IMG/VR virus record: IMGVR_UViG_3300027668_000008
Coordinates: 124,001-188,000 of that record
Reading direction: 5' to 3' (one strand)
DNA length: 64,000 nt
Shown here piece by piece: positions 2,976 through 26,865 of the stretch. The translations under genes and the position numbers were made by a program. The notes beneath the pieces were generated by a model that ran no database searches, was not told where the DNA came from, and worked only from the letters and a program-made list of their open reading frames with translations. How positions within the stretch are numbered: position 1 is the stretch's first letter; each line of letters begins with the position of its first letter.

Positions 2976-3719
2976 TTAAATCTTGGCAACTGCAATATAC
3001 TCGTAACTTCTACTGAATAGGTTTTTGTAAAACAGGCTTTGAGATATTTTAAAATCTGAACAGCCTAAGTCGTGTATATATTTTGCAAGTTGCTTGAAAT
3101 ATAATGTTCTTTTTATTTCAGTTACCTCGGATATTAATTTACCGTTGCTTAACTGATACATTGTTTCGTTGAATTTCTGCTTGTCTGCACGATCCCATGT
3201 TCTATGGCATACAAATACATGACTTGCTTCACCACTATTAATAACCATGGGTGGATCCACTAAACGGTCCACTGACTTCATATTTTTGAAATCTTTAATA
3301 GTAGTTACTAATGCTTTTCTAGTATAACCATGTGCATCAGCAATAATTTGTTTCTGAGTATCCTCAGTTCCGTATCTCGTAAAATAACTATCCAATGCTA
3401 ATGTAACATCAAACTTTTGATCTGTAATTTCATCTTTAGTTAATACTGTAACGTGCTTTAAATCTTCATGGTTACGGATAAATTCCGATTCATGATCATC
3501 TCTACACAATACATGATACTTAAAAGCATCTACGTTGTCTTTGCATAATGCCCAAAGAATAGGATTGAAGCCCAACACCAATGCAGTGCTATATTCGTCA
3601 GTTGTAAAATCGCCCATTGTATCTCTTATGATCTGAGCTTTTAATTCTACTAACTTTAGAAATTTAGTTTTATCCTGCTTATATAGATTGTCAACAGTAT
3701 TGTACCAATACATTTTCAT
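2976..3719 (-). CDS. Hypothetical protein, possibly degenerate SAM-methyltransferase fold
   Basis: 247-aa ORF; ALVLG and FDVTLAL resemble MTase motifs but the glycine loop is degenerate. Confidence 0.4.
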   Translation of the reverse strand: MKMYWYNTVDNLYKQDKTKFLKLVELKAQIIRDTMGDFTTDEYSTALVLGFNPILWALCKDNVDAFKYHVLCRDDHESEFIRNHEDLKHVTVLTKDEITDQKFDVTLALDSYFTRYGTEDTQKQIIADAHGYTRKALVTTIKDFKNMKSVDRLVDPPMVINSGEASHVFVCHRTWDRADKQKFNETMYQLSNGKLISEVTEIKRTLYFKQLAKYIHDLGCSDFKISQSLFYKNLFSRSYEYIAVAKI

Positions 3720-3784
3720 TTTTATCCTTTTGGATTGTTTTATACAATGTATTTATCAATACTATTGCGTAGCCGTATAAGACT

Positions 3785-3967
3785 CTACTTTTCGTACTTA
3801 CTAGTGTCTTTGGCTAATAGTAAACAGTCTGCTTGGATTGTTTGTATAGCAACATCAATCTCGTCTTTAGACGATTTAATTGGACCGTACTTCATATCTC
3901 GTAACTTATCCGATTGTACCTTAATGCTGTCTATCTTTTCACAGAACTGACTTATTTTATGCAACAT
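3785..3967 (-). CDS. Small hypothetical protein downstream of tRNA cluster
   Basis: 60-aa ORF with AGGAG RBS. Confidence 0.7.
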   Translation of the reverse strand: MLHKISQFCEKIDSIKVQSDKLRDMKYGPIKSSKDEIDVAIQTIQADCLLLAKDTSKYEK

Positions 3968-3984
3968 AGCATTTCTCCTTAATT

Positions 3985-4061
3985 TGGCGCACCCTACAGG
4001 ACTCGAACCTATTACCTCTGGTTCCGCAAACCAACGCTCTATCCAGATGAGCTAAGGGTGC
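3985..4061 (-). tRNA. tRNA-Arg, anticodon GCG
   Basis: GCACCCT/AGGGTGC acceptor stem, A20, anticodon arm TTGGT-TTGCGGA-ACCAG, TTCGAGT T-loop, encoded CCA. Confidence 0.9.
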
Positions 4062-4072
4062 CTTTATAGTTT

Positions 4073-4148
4073 TGGTGGAGGATACAGGGATCGAACCTGC
4101 TACCTCCTGAATGCAAATCAGGCGCTCTCCCAGATGAGCTAATCCCCC
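4073..4148 (-). tRNA. tRNA-Ala, anticodon TGC
   Basis: GGGGGAT/ATCCTCC stem with G3:U70, arm CCTGA-TTTGCAT-TCAGG, encoded CCA. Confidence 0.95.
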
Positions 4149-4181
4149 AAAACTAAATTCTTTTTGTAACATACTAATACT

Positions 4182-4210
4182 ATAATATAACATTCAACGA
4201 GTGTTGTCAA
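4182..4210 (-). promoter_or_regulatory. sigma70-type promoter for tRNA-Ala/tRNA-Arg
   Basis: TTGACA-N17-TATTAT. Confidence 0.75.
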
Positions 4211-4222
4211 GAGCCATAAAAG

Positions 4223-4312
4223 TGGCGGAGAGACTGGGATTTGAACCCAGGAAAGAGTTGCCCCTTTGCCGGTTTAGTAAACCGGTGCTTTCAACCGCTC
4301 AGCCATCTCTCC
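4223..4312 (-). tRNA. tRNA-Ser (long variable arm), anticodon ACT
   Basis: GGAGAGA/TCTCTCC stem, G73, long variable arm AAAG-GGGCAACT-CTTT, arm CCGGT-TTACTAA-ACCGG, encoded CCA. Confidence 0.88.
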
Positions 4313-4321
4313 GGAGTATTT

Positions 4322-4525
4322 TTATTTAGGTACGATTTCAAAACACTTAACTAGTGCCTGCATATCAGTCAAACCAGCCGCTTTACATTCTGCGTATAAT
4401 TTCTTTCTAGCGCCGACTACTTCGTCTGGTGCTACTTTTATACTTTGCATCCTATTTGATTTTGCATTAGGATTCATGCCACGATATCTGGTATTATGTT
4501 TATTATTTTTGTTACGATCATTCAC
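4322..4525 (-). CDS. Small basic hypothetical protein between tRNAs
   Basis: 67-aa ORF, GTG start. Confidence 0.55.
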   Translation of the reverse strand: MNDRNKNNKHNTRYRGMNPNAKSNRMQSIKVAPDEVVGARKKLYAECKAAGLTDMQALVKCFEIVPK

Positions 4526-4541
4526 GCAATTTATTTTTCTG

Positions 4542-4617
4542 TGGTGCCGCTTCCCGGATTCGAACTGGGCACCTACTGATTACAAATCAGTTGCTCTACC
4601 AAATGAGCTAAAGCGGC
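4542..4617 (-). tRNA. tRNA-Thr, anticodon TGT
   Basis: GCCGCTT/AAGCGGC stem, arm ACTGA-TTTGTAA-TCAGT, encoded CCA. Confidence 0.95.
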
Positions 4618-4695
4618 GTTGATATTATTTACCTGTTAAAATTTTCAATGTCTTATTATTGAATACAGTACAAGTATTTGTTTCATTATAACGAA

Positions 4696-4899
4696 CTATT
4701 GCTCGATTGTCAACTCTTTTTCTGCGTCTTGCCAAAAATCTTTTAACGAGTCTAATTTCTCTGTTAAGTCTTGTATTTTAATTCTTGTTTCTGCTTCTTC
4801 TTTTACATCTTCTATTAGTGGAAGATTGTCTTTCATTTCTGCTATACGCCTGGTATATTCAGATATGAGTGTCTTGTATAGTGTCTTTGATTGTTTCAT
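4696..4899 (-). CDS. Small coiled-coil hypothetical protein
   Basis: 67-aa ORF. Confidence 0.65.
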   Translation of the reverse strand: MKQSKTLYKTLISEYTRRIAEMKDNLPLIEDVKEEAETRIKIQDLTEKLDSLKDFWQDAEKELTIEQ

Positions 4900-4920
4900 T
4901 TTGTGATTATTCTTTAAAGG

Positions 4921-5817
4921 TTATGCTAGTTTGAACATTCCGCCAAAGATGTTATCAACAAATGTACTGTGGTCAATCTGCTCGTAACTTGTGCAGTTCT
5001 CGGGTAGAAACCCTCGATGCCACATATAAACAAAACTAGCAACTACACAGGCGTTAGCATAATGCCAACTGTTAAGTGTTCTTCGTCCAGGTATCAGTAA
5101 ATGACTGTGTTTTACTAAATCTTCTGTTTGATACTCTGAACTACTTGTAACCGTAGTATGGAACAATGTTTCTGTGTGCCAATCAACTTTACTAGCATCA
5201 ACGTTGTCGGTATCTGCTATCCAGTTTGTTTGTATGTCGATATTATCATCTCCTAGCCATGAATCAATTTCACTAGCGAAAAAATATTTATTTTGTAACT
5301 TAATAAGTTTAGGTTGCCCTAATACGTTATTCATTACTTCTTGGTAATCTTCTAATGACAATCCAGGTAAAGCATTTTCACCTGTTTCACTAGTTTTAGA
5401 AATTCCTGTAAAATGTTTGATAGACTTTACATTCTCGTTTACATTAACAATACGTTTAATCCACATATCCGTTGCCGCATATTGTAAATTAATATCATCT
5501 AAAATAATGTTATTGTGCGGTGCTACGTCATCTTGTAATGCAAATGTACAAAGTAACGGTATTCCGAATTCTGAACATAAGCCTACTATATTGTCATCTT
5601 CATAGTTTGGGTTTGTACAAACTACAATGTCAGCACCTCTGACAATATCATGCATTGTTAGTGTTGATGTAAATTTTCTAACATATGCTGGGTTCAAATA
5701 ATTATCACCAAAACAAGTAACTTGAATTTCATCATCGAACTGTACTGCATTAATTTCAAGTAATGTTTTTACGGCATATAAATTTTTGCCATCGCCTACT
5801 ATGTGTATATTAATCAT
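4921..5817 (-). CDS. Rossmann-fold protein, saccharopine dehydrogenase / homospermidine synthase-like (divergent)
   Basis: N-terminal IHIVGDG, DIVRGADIVVCT and CSEFGIPLL resemble the NAD(P)-binding domain of this family. Confidence 0.4.
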   Translation of the reverse strand: MINIHIVGDGKNLYAVKTLLEINAVQFDDEIQVTCFGDNYLNPAYVRKFTSTLTMHDIVRGADIVVCTNPNYEDDNIVGLCSEFGIPLLCTFALQDDVAPHNNIILDDINLQYAATDMWIKRIVNVNENVKSIKHFTGISKTSETGENALPGLSLEDYQEVMNNVLGQPKLIKLQNKYFFASEIDSWLGDDNIDIQTNWIADTDNVDASKVDWHTETLFHTTVTSSSEYQTEDLVKHSHLLIPGRRTLNSWHYANACVVASFVYMWHRGFLPENCTSYEQIDHSTFVDNIFGGMFKLA

Positions 5818-6121
5818 TGAACCTCTCCCTAACGTGTTGATAAAAAGTGTCTAATTCTCCACCAAACTGTCCGGTTAGATGGTCTACTGCTTGTAGGCAA
5901 TATTCTGTATTATTGTTGTTCAATTCAATTACAAAGTCTTCGTGCAACTTTGTCCAGTTTTCTAACTGTGGTAAACTGTCAAGGCTTAGTTTAGCAGTAT
6001 CTACAACTGCATATAGTGTAAGGTCTGTGTTCTTTTCTTTCACAGTAACCGTGTCTAGTTCAAGCACGGTGTACCTGTCTCTTAATGCTTCTGCTTGTTT
6101 TTTACCATATACTATGTGCAT
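5810..6121 (-). CDS. Stand-alone homologue of the adenylate cyclase C-terminal region
   Basis: MHIVYGKKQAEALRDRYTVLELDTVTVKEK aligns by eye with LTLLVGESSVSDEYTFIELDKIAVKGK of the cyclase at 9030-11063; the helical tail (LHEDF..ELDTFYQHVRER vs EHDKY..ELHNYYEVMSER) also aligns; ATG at 6121. Confidence 0.65.
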   Translation of the reverse strand: MHIVYGKKQAEALRDRYTVLELDTVTVKEKNTDLTLYAVVDTAKLSLDSLPQLENWTKLHEDFVIELNNNNTEYCLQAVDHLTGQFGGELDTFYQHVRERFND

Positions 6122-7268: not shown

Positions 7269-8241
7269 CAATTGGTAAGAATTTCCATTGTAATACGTTA
7301 TTATCTTTACAATAGTCTTCAAACCTATGTCTAATTGCAACAACATTATCTGCACCATATTTAATTCTAGTTGGCAAGTATGTAAAGATATTAGAACGCC
7401 ATATGCTAGAACCAGGCTTTATCCAGGAAAAATCTTCTATAATATCCTTATTAAGGAATTCAACTGGAATAGATTCAAACCAATCCCAAAAATCTTCTCT
7501 GTCTATACTATCAGGTAACTGATTTAATACCGTTTCTTTATTGGTATAAATTTCTTTGTAGTACTCGATACTGTGTTTGCTTATATCATAAAACACAACT
7601 GTGTCAGGTATTACGTTATTTTTATAATATTCAGTTAATGTTATAAATGGTTTGTTACCAGCACACAATAAGTAAAGTGTTTTATCATAAGAGTAAAATT
7701 TATCGTATTGTTCTTTGCTACAATCTTTGTACACAGGTTCTGTGTTTTCCACATATAACCTATCTAAGTCTAAATTATAGTTGTGTTCGGTTTCCCAATC
7801 ATCATCAGTTTTGACAAATGTATCCAATCCAACTTCTTTAGAAAACCATTTTATTGTTGTATTAACAGGAACATCTTGTACAAACGTATCAGATCCTGAC
7901 ACAAACCAATCATGATTTAATCGTATAACAAAACAAAAACTATTCATGTTTTTAAATGCAATAATATCCGGTTCATCTTTAATTGCTTCTTTTACAAAAT
8001 CTAACATTAATTCGTTACGCAAATATGTACCTTCTCGAACGATAAGTGCGTAATCTGCCTTGTTTCTGAGGTTAGTAAGAGTACTGTCTAATGTACCAGT
8101 AATTTTAAATATATCAATATGTTCGTTATCTGCTACAGTATTATCATCTCTGATCAATCCCATATCAAATATGTTTGACCAAGTTATGTTGTGTAAGTAC
8201 TCGTCACTTGTACAATTTAATGCTACTGCTACTAAATTCAT
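7222..8241 (-). CDS. Hypothetical protein
   Basis: 339-aa ORF coupled to the upstream hydroxylase. Confidence 0.7.
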   Translation of the reverse strand: MNLVAVALNCTSDEYLHNITWSNIFDMGLIRDDNTVADNEHIDIFKITGTLDSTLTNLRNKADYALIVREGTYLRNELMLDFVKEAIKDEPDIIAFKNMNSFCFVIRLNHDWFVSGSDTFVQDVPVNTTIKWFSKEVGLDTFVKTDDDWETEHNYNLDLDRLYVENTEPVYKDCSKEQYDKFYSYDKTLYLLCAGNKPFITLTEYYKNNVIPDTVVFYDISKHSIEYYKEIYTNKETVLNQLPDSIDREDFWDWFESIPVEFLNKDIIEDFSWIKPGSSIWRSNIFTYLPTRIKYGADNVVAIRHRFEDYCKDNNVLQWKFLPIVKLQVLQEIQTIKQQ

Positions 8242-8864
8242 ATCAACTTCCTGTAGTTTTCATAAGCCTGTTTCTTAAACTCTGTAGTTTTGCCACCATG
8301 TAAAATAATATGATATCTATGTTCATTGCTATTATTACGAACACTGTGCTTGTTACTTAAATCTAACCATGCACCTTTATTTTGTTTAAATGGTACAACT
8401 CCGACATCCTCCATAACAAATTCACATCCTTCTGGATTGTTAATTGCAATGTTGATAGGACCTAATCTACTTTTATCATAATCTCTATGTGATTCAATAT
8501 AACCACCGGGTGCTACAGACATAATTCTAATTCTATCAAAGTCTATAAAATAATTTTGTTCTAACAACCATTGTTTAAGTGAAGGTATACTGTTACTTGC
8601 GTTAGTCCAATCAAAGACTGCATCTTCTTCTTGTATATCATAAAACATTGGAGCATTAGTGAATTCATCACCTTGCCCGTGCATAACTAATGATGACCAA
8701 CCTTTTGATTGGTCTTCTCTGTGATTATAAAAGTTATCTTGTGCTTGTGATATTTCTTGTAAAATATTTTCTACAGGCATATTGACATCGAACATTAAAT
8801 AAGGTAACTTACTATCTGTTCTTAATTCAATTGGATTTTTACATTCTTTGTTAAAACTTAACAT
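8238..8864 (-). CDS. Aspartyl/asparaginyl beta-hydroxylase-like 2OG-Fe(II) oxygenase
   Basis: IRIMSVAPGGYIESHRDY (HxD) and HSVRNNSNEHRYHIILHG; likely start ATG 8864 (ORF extends to 8927). Confidence 0.8.
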   Translation of the reverse strand: MLSFNKECKNPIELRTDSKLPYLMFDVNMPVENILQEISQAQDNFYNHREDQSKGWSSLVMHGQGDEFTNAPMFYDIQEEDAVFDWTNASNSIPSLKQWLLEQNYFIDFDRIRIMSVAPGGYIESHRDYDKSRLGPINIAINNPEGCEFVMEDVGVVPFKQNKGAWLDLSNKHSVRNNSNEHRYHIILHGGKTTEFKKQAYENYRKLI

Positions 8865-8883
8865 TTGTCGATTGTCTTTTCTT

Positions 8884-9021
8884 TTATTCTTGTTCGCCGT
8901 TTGCTTTACTTTTTGCGTAGGCGGCATCTGCTCTCATTTGTGTTGCTATTCGCAGTTGCATATAATCTCTTAAAGGTGGCTTAGTCTTTGGTTTATCTTT
9001 TCGTGCAGAACCCAGACTCAA
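8884..9021 (-). CDS. Possible 45-aa basic peptide (TTG start)
   Basis: Manual translation MSLGSARKDKPKTKPPLRDYMQLRIATQMRADAAYAKSKANGEQE fills the intergenic gap. Confidence 0.35.
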   Translation of the reverse strand: MSLGSARKDKPKTKPPLRDYMQLRIATQMRADAAYAKSKANGEQE

Positions 9022-9029
9022 CGAATCTT

Positions 9030-11063
9030 TTATTTGCTTGTTGCGATGAATACTCCGTCCCATTGTTTTGTACCTTTTCTTTTTAGCTCATGGGCCCGTT
9101 CAGACATTACTTCATAGTAATTATGAAGCTCTTCAGGGCATACACTTTGTAATTTGGAAATTTGATTAATCGCTAGATCCCACTTGGAATCTCTATATAA
9201 CTGCAAATATTTATCATGTTCCTTGACGTAATTAACTGCACACTCACTAAACAAAGCAGTATAAATGGTAGCCGGTACTGTCTTGCCCTTAACTGCTATT
9301 TTATCTAGTTCTATGAATGTGTATTCGTCGGATACTGAACTTTCACCAACTAACAATGTTAAACCGTACTCTTTACTTTGCCCCTCTAGTCTTGCCGCTA
9401 AATTAACACAATCACCCAAAACTGAGTAGTCAAAACGTTGATTAGACCCCATATTACCTACCACAGCACTACCTGTGTTAATACCAACACCAATTTTAAT
9501 AGGCATTAATCCTTCGGATTCTAATTCTTTATTAAGTTTTCTTAATGCAACAAACATCTCATCAGCAGTTTTAATTGCTAATTCACGTTGTTTAGGAACA
9601 TCTAAAGGTGCGTTCCAAAATGCCATAAGTGCATCACCAATATACTTGTCTACTGTGCCTTCGTTTTTCATAACAATATCTGTCATAGGTGTCATGTACC
9701 TATTAATTAAAGAAGTTAACCCTTGTGGATTTGTTTTGTATTGTTCACTAATAGGAGTAAATCCTCTAATGTCACTAAACAATAAAGTTAACTCTCTTGT
9801 ATCGCCACCTAACTTTAATAGTTCTGGATTTTGTTGTAATTTCTTAACCATAGCAGGTGCTAGATAGTGCTCAAACTGTTTTTTAATTTGTTGTTTTAAA
9901 CTAAACTCTTTTACAAATCTATTAAACACTGCATGAAAGCCTGTAAGTACAAATACTATTAATGGCATTGTTACATCGAGCAAATACAAATAGTGTTGCC
10001 ATGCATACAATGAACCATATACTAATCCTGCACTAACACTTAATATCGTAAGTCCAACAATATAATATGGTAATCTAACACTTATTAAAATAATAAGGAG
10101 ACCTAACGTAACAGAAGTTAGTAATTCAACTAGCACGGCCCAATACGGGCGTTGTATCTGGTCTCCGTCGATAACTGTTTGTAGTGTTACTGCCGAAGGT
10201 ATATAATTATATTTAGGACCAGTAGGTGTAGCAATTACTCCACCGATGCCTTCTGCTGTCGAACCTATAATAACTGTTTTGCCTGCGAATAAAGAAAAGT
10301 CGTCACTACTTGCACTAATTGTTTCAAACTCTTTATTCCAACGTAACCATATTTGTCCATTGGGATCTGTACTAATAATTGGATATCCCGGAACACGAAT
10401 TTTATCTATTCCGCCTTGGTTTGCTTTAATTTGATAACTTGGTTTACCTGTACTAACTCTAATAACTTCGATTGCTATTGATGGGTATGTGTTAGTGCCT
10501 ACTCTCATAATTAAAGGAACACGTCTTACAACACCATCTATCTCATTAGGTGTATTTAGAACACCAACGCCGTCTGCATTTAAGCCTAGTAACGGAATAG
10601 GTCCTAACATACCGGGCCATTCGAACAAATAAGGTACTGCATCACCTATTGTTGCAACTCCTCTTGTTACCGCATTTTTATTTACTTTTAAACTTCCTAC
10701 TTGTGCAATAACAATCCCATTGCCGGCTATCGATTCAACAAATGCTTGGTCACCGCCTAATCTATCATCTTCACTAAACAGTATAGGTATTACAATTACA
10801 CCTGCTCCTGCTTCACGCAACTTCCAAATAAGTTCTGCTAGAACATCACGTTTCCAGGGCCACTGTCCGTATTTTTCAATAGATGCTTCATCTATTGTTA
10901 CAATACCAATGTCGTTGGATACAACCGGAGTATCGGTTTGTTGTAGTAAATCAAACTGTTTAAGTCTCAATATTTCAACTATACTACTATTGCCGTAATG
11001 GAAGAAGGTTAGAACTGCCAATGTTACAAAGGCAGTTAACCAATGCGTTAAATATTTTTTCAT
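9030..11063 (-). CDS. CHASE2-domain class III adenylate cyclase
   Basis: N-terminal TM; CHASE2 motifs IDEASIEKYGQWPWKR and DGVVRRVPL; three TMs; catalytic LFSDIRGFT, DKYIGDALMAF, VGNMGS, DYSVLGDCVNLAARLEG, IAVKGK. Confidence 0.95.
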   Translation of the reverse strand: MKKYLTHWLTAFVTLAVLTFFHYGNSSIVEILRLKQFDLLQQTDTPVVSNDIGIVTIDEASIEKYGQWPWKRDVLAELIWKLREAGAGVIVIPILFSEDDRLGGDQAFVESIAGNGIVIAQVGSLKVNKNAVTRGVATIGDAVPYLFEWPGMLGPIPLLGLNADGVGVLNTPNEIDGVVRRVPLIMRVGTNTYPSIAIEVIRVSTGKPSYQIKANQGGIDKIRVPGYPIISTDPNGQIWLRWNKEFETISASSDDFSLFAGKTVIIGSTAEGIGGVIATPTGPKYNYIPSAVTLQTVIDGDQIQRPYWAVLVELLTSVTLGLLIILISVRLPYYIVGLTILSVSAGLVYGSLYAWQHYLYLLDVTMPLIVFVLTGFHAVFNRFVKEFSLKQQIKKQFEHYLAPAMVKKLQQNPELLKLGGDTRELTLLFSDIRGFTPISEQYKTNPQGLTSLINRYMTPMTDIVMKNEGTVDKYIGDALMAFWNAPLDVPKQRELAIKTADEMFVALRKLNKELESEGLMPIKIGVGINTGSAVVGNMGSNQRFDYSVLGDCVNLAARLEGQSKEYGLTLLVGESSVSDEYTFIELDKIAVKGKTVPATIYTALFSECAVNYVKEHDKYLQLYRDSKWDLAINQISKLQSVCPEELHNYYEVMSERAHELKRKGTKQWDGVFIATSK

Positions 11064-26340: not shown

Positions 26341-26479
26341 AAAATTACTTGGTACTTTTTATATATCTGTATATAGTTCGTCACGTTCACTGAAACGTGT
26401 GCAATTAGAAAGTGTATTTCCATGTTACCAGTGTATGCTTGTAACAATCCTTTGTCACTAATGTTTCTAACTTTGGTAT

Positions 26480-26745
26480 ATGCAACGATTTCTGTTGCTA
26501 GGTACGTTGCCAACCCCCACGTGCTTATTTTACTAAGCCGCTAATGCCATTTCTGGCTGATAATTGTTATTTGCAATTATAAAGTTTCTTCGCGATAACG
26601 GTGCTTAGATCCCGAGAACTCCACTAACTCTAGTAATTACCTGTCGATCCTATTCATCCCCATATGAAAAATCTGTTGTATTTGGTGGAGATGCCGGGAT
26701 TCGCACCCGGGTCCAGTTTAACTTTTGAATTGCTTCAACGTTCTA
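26480..26745 (-). ncRNA. ssrA: Circularly permuted two-piece tmRNA (alphaproteobacterial type), tag ANNNYQPEMALAA
   Basis: Acceptor piece ends with T-arm and CATCTCCACCA at 26683; 21-nt spacer; coding piece starts GGGGATGAATAGGATCGAC at 26661 (G3:U70); tag ORF 26574-26533; CCTAGCAACAGAA near the 3' end. Confidence 0.93.
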
Positions 26746-26749
26746 AGTA

Positions 26750-26780
26750 TATTTATACACTATTCACTTGACTTTGTCAA
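26750..26780 (-). promoter_or_regulatory. Hybrid sigma70 / late promoter of tmRNA
   Basis: TTGACA-N17-TATAAA, where the -10 is part of TATAAATA. Confidence 0.8.
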
Positions 26781-26865
26781 CCAAATAATATACAAATAAA
26801 GTACTAATATTAAAAATAAAAGATAAGTATTCTATAAAAGCAAAATACATCAACTAAAGGTAATT

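Follow-up and report, generated by a model that had tools for sequence, protein, structure and literature searches.

Serine codons of the AGY type are normally decoded in bacteria by tRNA-Ser(GCU), the E. coli serV type. This tRNA has a type II body, discriminator base G73, the pairs G1-C72, G2-C71 and A3-U70, and an anticodon loop with U33 and A37-A38. Many phages also encode sets of tRNAs that match phage codon use, e.g., the T4-like phages, cyanophages and jumbo phages such as PA5oct, where a cluster of tRNAs lies on the coding strand and each tRNA matches a codon that the phage uses heavily. An adenosine at wobble position 34 that is left unmodified is found in Mycoplasma tRNA-Thr(AGU), in a Salmonella tRNA-Pro(AGG) mutant and in orthogonal M. 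jannaschii ANN tRNAs expressed in E. coli; in these tRNAs A34 prefers U at the third codon position. The known natural cases are in four-codon boxes, where misreading does no harm. In bacterial tRNA-Arg(ACG), on the other hand, the encoded A34 is normally converted to inosine by TadA. A review of tRNA gene sets states that A34 in the Ser/Arg split box is "universally missing", that phage tRNA sets lack the same "prohibited" genes, and that Arg-GCG is missing from bacteria (PMC8007984).

The sequence described here is a tRNA-Ser with anticodon ACU from a marine jumbo phage. It shares the type II body, the serine identity elements and the decoding box of tRNA-Ser(GCU), but position 34 is A and not G, such that AGC should no longer be read. 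Where both genes are side by side in cellular genomes they are only about 68% identical, and represent long-separated isoacceptors rather than point mutants. As in other phage tRNA sets, the gene is part of a cluster that matches phage codon use, but PA5oct itself carries Ser-GCU and Ser-UGA, neither of which is orthologous to this gene. Compared with the tRNA-Arg(ACG)/TadA system, A34 is also encoded in the gene and the loop shares U33-A34-C35, but U36 replaces G36. Literature searches of full texts, which do not cover every journal, found no description of a natural tRNA-Ser(ACU) in phages or bacteria. Thus codon-matching phage tRNAs are already known, and what differs here is an anticodon thought to be excluded.

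Structure of the tRNA-Ser(ACU) gene

The window analyzed is a 64,000 nt stretch representing positions 124001–188000 of a 306,714-bp IMG/VR virus record (CheckV 87% complete, GC content 35%). The tRNA-Ser(ACU) gene is at window positions 4223–4312 on the - strand. ARAGORN calls tRNA-Ser(act) at these positions, both in the window and in the whole record. The Rfam tRNA model (RF00005) scores the sequence 59.4 bits against a gathering score of 29 (E = 2.5e-10). Read on the - strand (4312 down to 4223), the sequence has a 7-bp acceptor stem that starts with G1-C72, G2-C71 and A3-U70, a 5-bp anticodon stem (CCGGU/ACCGG), a 7-nt anticodon loop, a long variable arm with a 6-bp stem, discriminator G73 and an encoded CCA. 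The minimum-free-energy fold is the cloverleaf with the extra arm (-33.6 kcal/mol, z = -3.0). The set G73, G2-C71 and A3-U70 is that recognized by E. coli SerRS, which does not use the anticodon.

The anticodon loop, U32 U33 A34 C35 U36 A37 A38 (UUACUAA), is at positions 4274–4280 (- strand). U36-A37 is as expected for readers of ANN codons. The anticodon is at positions 4276–4278, which read AGT on the + strand, and A34 is the complement of the T at 4278. The preliminary description had placed the anticodon one base to the right, at 4277–4279; apart from this small correction, its observation of an intact type II tRNA-Ser with A34 is confirmed. The loop was also examined as a shifted CUA (amber) anticodon. 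This reading is rejected because the base before C35 is A and not the universal U33, which fixes the reading register. With a 7-nt loop and an ACU anticodon, the tRNA has neither an anticodon complementary to a stop codon nor an enlarged loop, the properties of a suppressor or recoding tRNA.

The gene is far beyond chance expectation and is not a sequencing or assembly artefact. A second IMG/VR contig of 136 kb (locus L057) has the identical Ser gene in the same Arg-GCG/Ala-UGC/Ser-ACU/Thr-UGU array. At least 14 marine DNA runs from at least 11 studies hold 55–94% of the sampled words of the 3-kb stretch around the gene (window 3000–6000), i.e., the phage is marine and widespread. In an independent metagenome (run X4), a 499-nt contig spans positions 4102–4600 with a single change, G>A at 4260 in the variable arm, and the anticodon is unchanged. 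Read support at the anticodon had been proposed beforehand as a test of the observation; the differences listed for four DNA runs from four studies include none at 4276–4278, although 20 weaker differences were not listed.

The tRNA array and codon use

Four tRNA genes are found by ARAGORN on the - strand at window positions 3985–4617, and the Rfam tRNA model scores all four well above threshold. The tRNA-Thr(UGU) gene (4542–4617) is the upstream member of the array and reads ACA, which is 55% of Thr codons. The tRNA-Ala(UGC) gene (4073–4148) reads GCA, 60% of Ala codons. The tRNA-Arg(GCG) gene (3985–4061), with the loop UUGCGGA, would read CGC and CGU without the need for inosine, and the phage's own CGN reader therefore does not need TadA. 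The whole record has eight tRNAs, all with an encoded CCA: Gln-UUG, Leu-UAA, Trp-CCA, Arg-UCU, Arg-GCG, Ala-UGC, Ser-ACU and Thr-UGU.

A sigma-70-like promoter, TTGACA-17-TATAAT (12 of 12 consensus positions), is at 4685–4713 (- strand), upstream of the Thr and Ser genes that it could drive. A second, TTGACA-17-TATTAT (11 of 12), is at 4182–4210 (- strand) between the Ser and Ala genes. These are consensus matches only, and the total number of promoter-like sites in the region is not above the shuffled expectation. Several unrelated Ser-ACT phage loci also have TTGACA just downstream of the Ser gene. Contigs from four marine metatranscriptomes cover the flanking ORFs at low depth but none covers 4212–4312. 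High depth over the Ala and Thr genes in these runs comes from short words shared with other organisms.

Codons were counted over 301 long ORFs that cover 86% of the phage record. There are 2793 AGT and 466 AGC codons, a ratio of 6 to 1; AGT is 51% of Ser codons, 86% of AGY and 3.2% of all codons. This is the strongest U-over-C skew of any NNY pair in this genome, where six two-fold pairs pooled give 63%. AGA is 50% of Arg codons, CGT 29% and CGC 4%. Six of the eight phage tRNAs pair directly with the top codon of their amino acid (ACA, GCA, TTA, CAA, AGA and AGT). However, for CGU the same phage uses a G34 tRNA and not an A34 tRNA, such that a Watson-Crick match to the U-ending codon is not a general rule in this genome.

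tRNA-Ser(ACU) in other phages

Pattern scans of IMG/VR show that this gene is not a singular oddity but belongs to a large class of phage tRNAs. With the anticodon stem and loop fixed and the anticodon left free, there were 53 hits, of which 13 are ACT and 22 GCT, all in type II Ser bodies. A second anticodon arm with a free anticodon gave 40 ACT to 51 GCT. A pattern free at position 32 and with R at position 34 gave 24–27 ACT to 93–96 GCT in its first 120 rows. Thus about one fifth of such AGY-type phage tRNA-Ser genes carry ACT, but these figures depend on the pattern used and on scans of limited depth and do not represent a census. A D-arm-plus-loop pattern that requires TTACTAA gave at least 120 hits. 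ARAGORN called 125 Ser(act) genes in the loci retrieved, and 96 of these are unique; both numbers are lower bounds for the class.

An alignment of the 96 unique sequences, which include the gene described here, shows that 98.7% of pair cells are canonical. Three to five pair types occur at many positions of the acceptor, anticodon, variable and T stems. The G2-C71 pair is G-C in 95 of 96 sequences and the A3-U70 pair is A-U in 87 of 96 (alignment columns 3–89 and 4–88). This covariation, which includes the variable stem, shows that these are tRNAs under structural selection. The nearest relatives of the gene are other viral ACT tRNAs (loci L162 at 89%, L102 at 87% and L120 at 85% identity) that share its variable arm.

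In phage arrays, Ser-ACT is accompanied by readers of A/U-ending codons, i.e., Thr-UGU, Gln-UUG, Asn-GUU, Glu-UUC, Arg-UCU, Lys-UUU, Leu-UAA and Ile-UAU, but occurs with Ser-GCU in only 2 of 125 loci. Contigs with ACT are more AT-rich than those with GCT (median GC 0.386 against 0.43, p = 7e-8) and use AGT for more of their serine (0.265 against 0.18, p = 1e-8). There is no AGT-over-AGC excess beyond the general bias towards U at the third codon position (p = 0.48). A specific skew was considered as a signature of the class and is not found; a dedicated AGU reader is not accompanied by a special avoidance of AGC. The phage described here is an extreme case within its class.

The Arg-GCG neighbor is conserved in L057, and relatives 82–84% identical to it occur in L157 and L140, which also carry Ser-ACT. 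The preliminary description noted that the wobble base is swapped in opposite directions in the two neighboring tRNAs and took this as a sign of selection. This is accurate as a description, but the pairing recurs only in these few relatives, and other ACT-bearing phages (L112 and L119) carry Arg-ACG instead. tRNA-Ile(TAT), which a review calls lost in prokaryotes, is present in 20 of 125 Ser-ACT phage loci (e.g., L016 and L021). Locus L075 has a tRNA with a CTA (amber-reading) anticodon near its Ser-ACT, and L129 has a doubtful 97-nt Phe(aaa) call.

GenBank phages seem to lack tRNA-Ser(ACU). Blast searches with three common Ser-ACT anticodon arms found no exact match in 50,697 GenBank phage records. 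S-PM2 carries GCT, and PA5oct, the closest cultured relative, carries GCT and TGA.

tRNA-Ser(ACU) in cellular genomes

The same ACT pattern gave at least 120 hits in contigs from one genome per species (loci L178–L297). Most are metagenome-assembled genomes (MAGs) of the Candidate Phyla Radiation (CPR), Planctomycetota and Verrucomicrobiota, e.g., L200, L214 and L245, with GC from 0.23 to 0.69, and nearly all of the cellular hits are in MAGs. In 55 loci a Ser-GCU gene lies in tandem at a median of 356 bp from the Ser-ACU gene, and it is this pair that is about 68% identical. Ile-TAT (e.g., L200 and L218, and many of the CPR loci) and Arg-GCG are often nearby. The flanking genes are housekeeping genes (FtsH, RecG, an ABC transporter), so these copies are chromosomal. 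The statement in the preliminary description that bacteria do not normally use ACU thus holds for studied bacteria only. The gene is still rare in cells. Among 201 sampled genomes of one such phylum only the seed genome matched, and to call it widespread in CPR would be an overstatement.

The possibility that Ser-ACU together with Arg-GCG marks a translation system without TadA was examined and rejected as a general rule. The TadA model scored above its cut-off in the genome labelled Singulisphaera (Planctomycetota), which has Ser-ACT. It gave only partial, sub-threshold hits or none in four genomes that look like CPR by size or label, although two of these carry other labels. Hits to this deaminase family are ambiguous, as even archaeal controls give matches. 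Some ACT-bearing phages also carry Arg-ACG, so absence of TadA is not required.

Probable decoding by an unmodified wobble adenosine

The evidence favors a working phage-encoded serine tRNA. The host seryl-tRNA synthetase recognizes the long extra arm, the acceptor stem and G73 and does not read the anticodon, and charging with serine is therefore expected. A34 most likely remains an ordinary adenosine, and this is considered likely but not certain. In this view the tRNA would read AGU by a full Watson-Crick pair and leave AGC to the host tRNA-Ser(GCU), and AGA and AGG would be left to arginine tRNAs, including the phage's own tRNA-Arg(UCU). As part of a set that matches the phage's most used codons, it would speed translation of a very AGU-rich genome. 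The existence of the gene, its integrity and conservation, the size of the class and the codon match rest on the sequence data presented here, whereas expression, charging with serine, an unmodified A34 and AGU-only reading are inferred.

Several lines of evidence bear on the state of A34. In E. coli, an orthogonal tRNA with an ACU anticodon in an Arg2-type loop showed only A at position 34 and no inosine. It read AGU at 9.4% and AGG at 0.36%, with AGC and AGA below detection, a ratio of at least 95:5 for AGU over AGC (PMC11066159). Only ACG, AUG and AAG were deaminated, and all three have the G36 that is absent from the loop of the phage tRNA. This test was of an archaeal tRNA body in E. coli, and its extension to the phage tRNA and its host is by analogy. 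The phage record has no CDA-fold deaminase gene. Ser-ACU coexists with the TadA substrate Arg-ACG in phage loci L112 and L119 and with the full-scoring TadA in the genome labelled Singulisphaera. An inosine that read AGA, the main Arg codon here, would be costly. The interpretation in the preliminary description is partly supported: selection, fit to codon use and the proposal that TadA would leave this anticodon unedited agree with these data, but the carriage of ACT across phage contigs tracks general AT-richness and AGU abundance rather than an AGU-over-AGC skew, and the link to Arg-GCG is limited to a few relatives.

An alternative role, considered unlikely, is that the tRNA maintains serine decoding when the host tRNA-Ser(GCU) is degraded during infection or cut by an anticodon nuclease, with the G34A change making the phage copy invisible to that nuclease. 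Phage tRNAs with altered anticodon loops that escape host tRNA-cleaving defenses are a recurrent theme, and in phage arrays ACT replaces GCT rather than accompanying it. However, no nuclease aimed at tRNA-Ser(GCU) was identified in this analysis, and an ACU tRNA cannot replace GCU for AGC codons. The same anticodon on chromosomes of CPR and Planctomycetota MAGs, next to housekeeping genes and a divergent GCU paralogue, points to a decoding role.

Deamination of A34 to inosine, by host TadA or an unrecognized enzyme, is still less likely. The tRNA would then read AGU, AGC and to some degree AGA. The loop shares U33-A34-C35 and A37-A38 with the tRNA-Arg(ACG) substrate, some TadA enzymes edit a second tRNA, Leu-AAG, and one tRNA that reads both AGY codons would serve all 3259 AGY codons of the phage. 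Against this are the E. coli data, the absence of C35-G36 and of a phage deaminase gene, and the I34:A3 pair that would place Ser at Arg sites. The Ser-GCU kept beside Ser-ACU in cellular genomes would also be redundant if ACU became ICU. A decaying or neutral copy of a Ser-GCU gene with a chance G-to-A change, or an assembly error, would be the default guess for a single case of an anticodon that reviews treat as absent, but is contradicted by the identical copies in independent assemblies, the 96 distinct homologues with intact, co-varying stems, nearest relatives that are themselves ACT tRNAs, and a Ser-GCU in the closest cultured relative that is not its orthologue.

It is somewhat more likely than not that tRNA-Ser(ACU) represents a natural, widely used isoacceptor with an unmodified wobble adenosine in a split codon box, common in uncultured phages and sporadic in CPR, Planctomycetota and Verrucomicrobiota. 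If so, the textbook exclusion of A34 from the Ser/Arg box is a habit of well-studied organisms and not a rule of decoding, and phages would have a dedicated AGU reader, often alongside other "missing" anticodons such as Arg-GCG and Ile-UAU. The phage described here carries two of the tRNAs termed missing, Ser-ACU and Arg-GCG, in one array. It provides a natural system to test how an unmodified wobble adenosine decodes where misreading would exchange serine for arginine. It also shows that annotation pipelines and codon-adaptation models should not treat ACU as an error, and offers a naturally selective AGU reader (as inferred above) that may be of interest for the reassignment of sense codons.

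Genomic context and possible host

Phage genes in the window include a DnaB helicase, a UvsX-like recombinase, an ssDNA-binding protein and tail proteins. By DnaB, the closest cultured relatives are the Pseudomonas jumbo phage PA5oct group (54% aa identity) and Sinorhizobium phage Phosso. Apart from the marine source, there are two leads to the host. A permuted (two-piece) tmRNA of the alphaproteobacterial type is encoded at window positions 26442–26799 (- strand), with the tag peptide ANNNYQPEMALAA and Rfam scores of 112.7 bits (tmRNA_permuted) and 107 bits (alpha_tmRNA). It is a possible clue to an alphaproteobacterial host; other Ser-ACT phage loci (L014, L022 and L061) carry a standard one-piece tmRNA. 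In addition, short contigs identical to the phage tRNA-Ala(UGC) (window 4073–4149; 59 nt, no differences) occur at 50–100 times the phage's depth in marine DNA and RNA runs, and continue into what looks like the 3' end of a tRNA-Ile, as in an rRNA-operon spacer. An abundant marine bacterium therefore shares this tRNA almost exactly. Similarly, contigs that match the 3' half of the Ser gene continue into a Ser-UGA-type 5' half.

The tRNA array is flanked by genes for a UvdE UV-damage endonuclease (330–1358, - strand) and an Asp/Asn beta-hydroxylase-like protein (8238–8927, - strand). A 677-aa ORF at 9030–11063 (- strand) has a CHASE2 sensor domain fused to an adenylate/guanylate cyclase domain.
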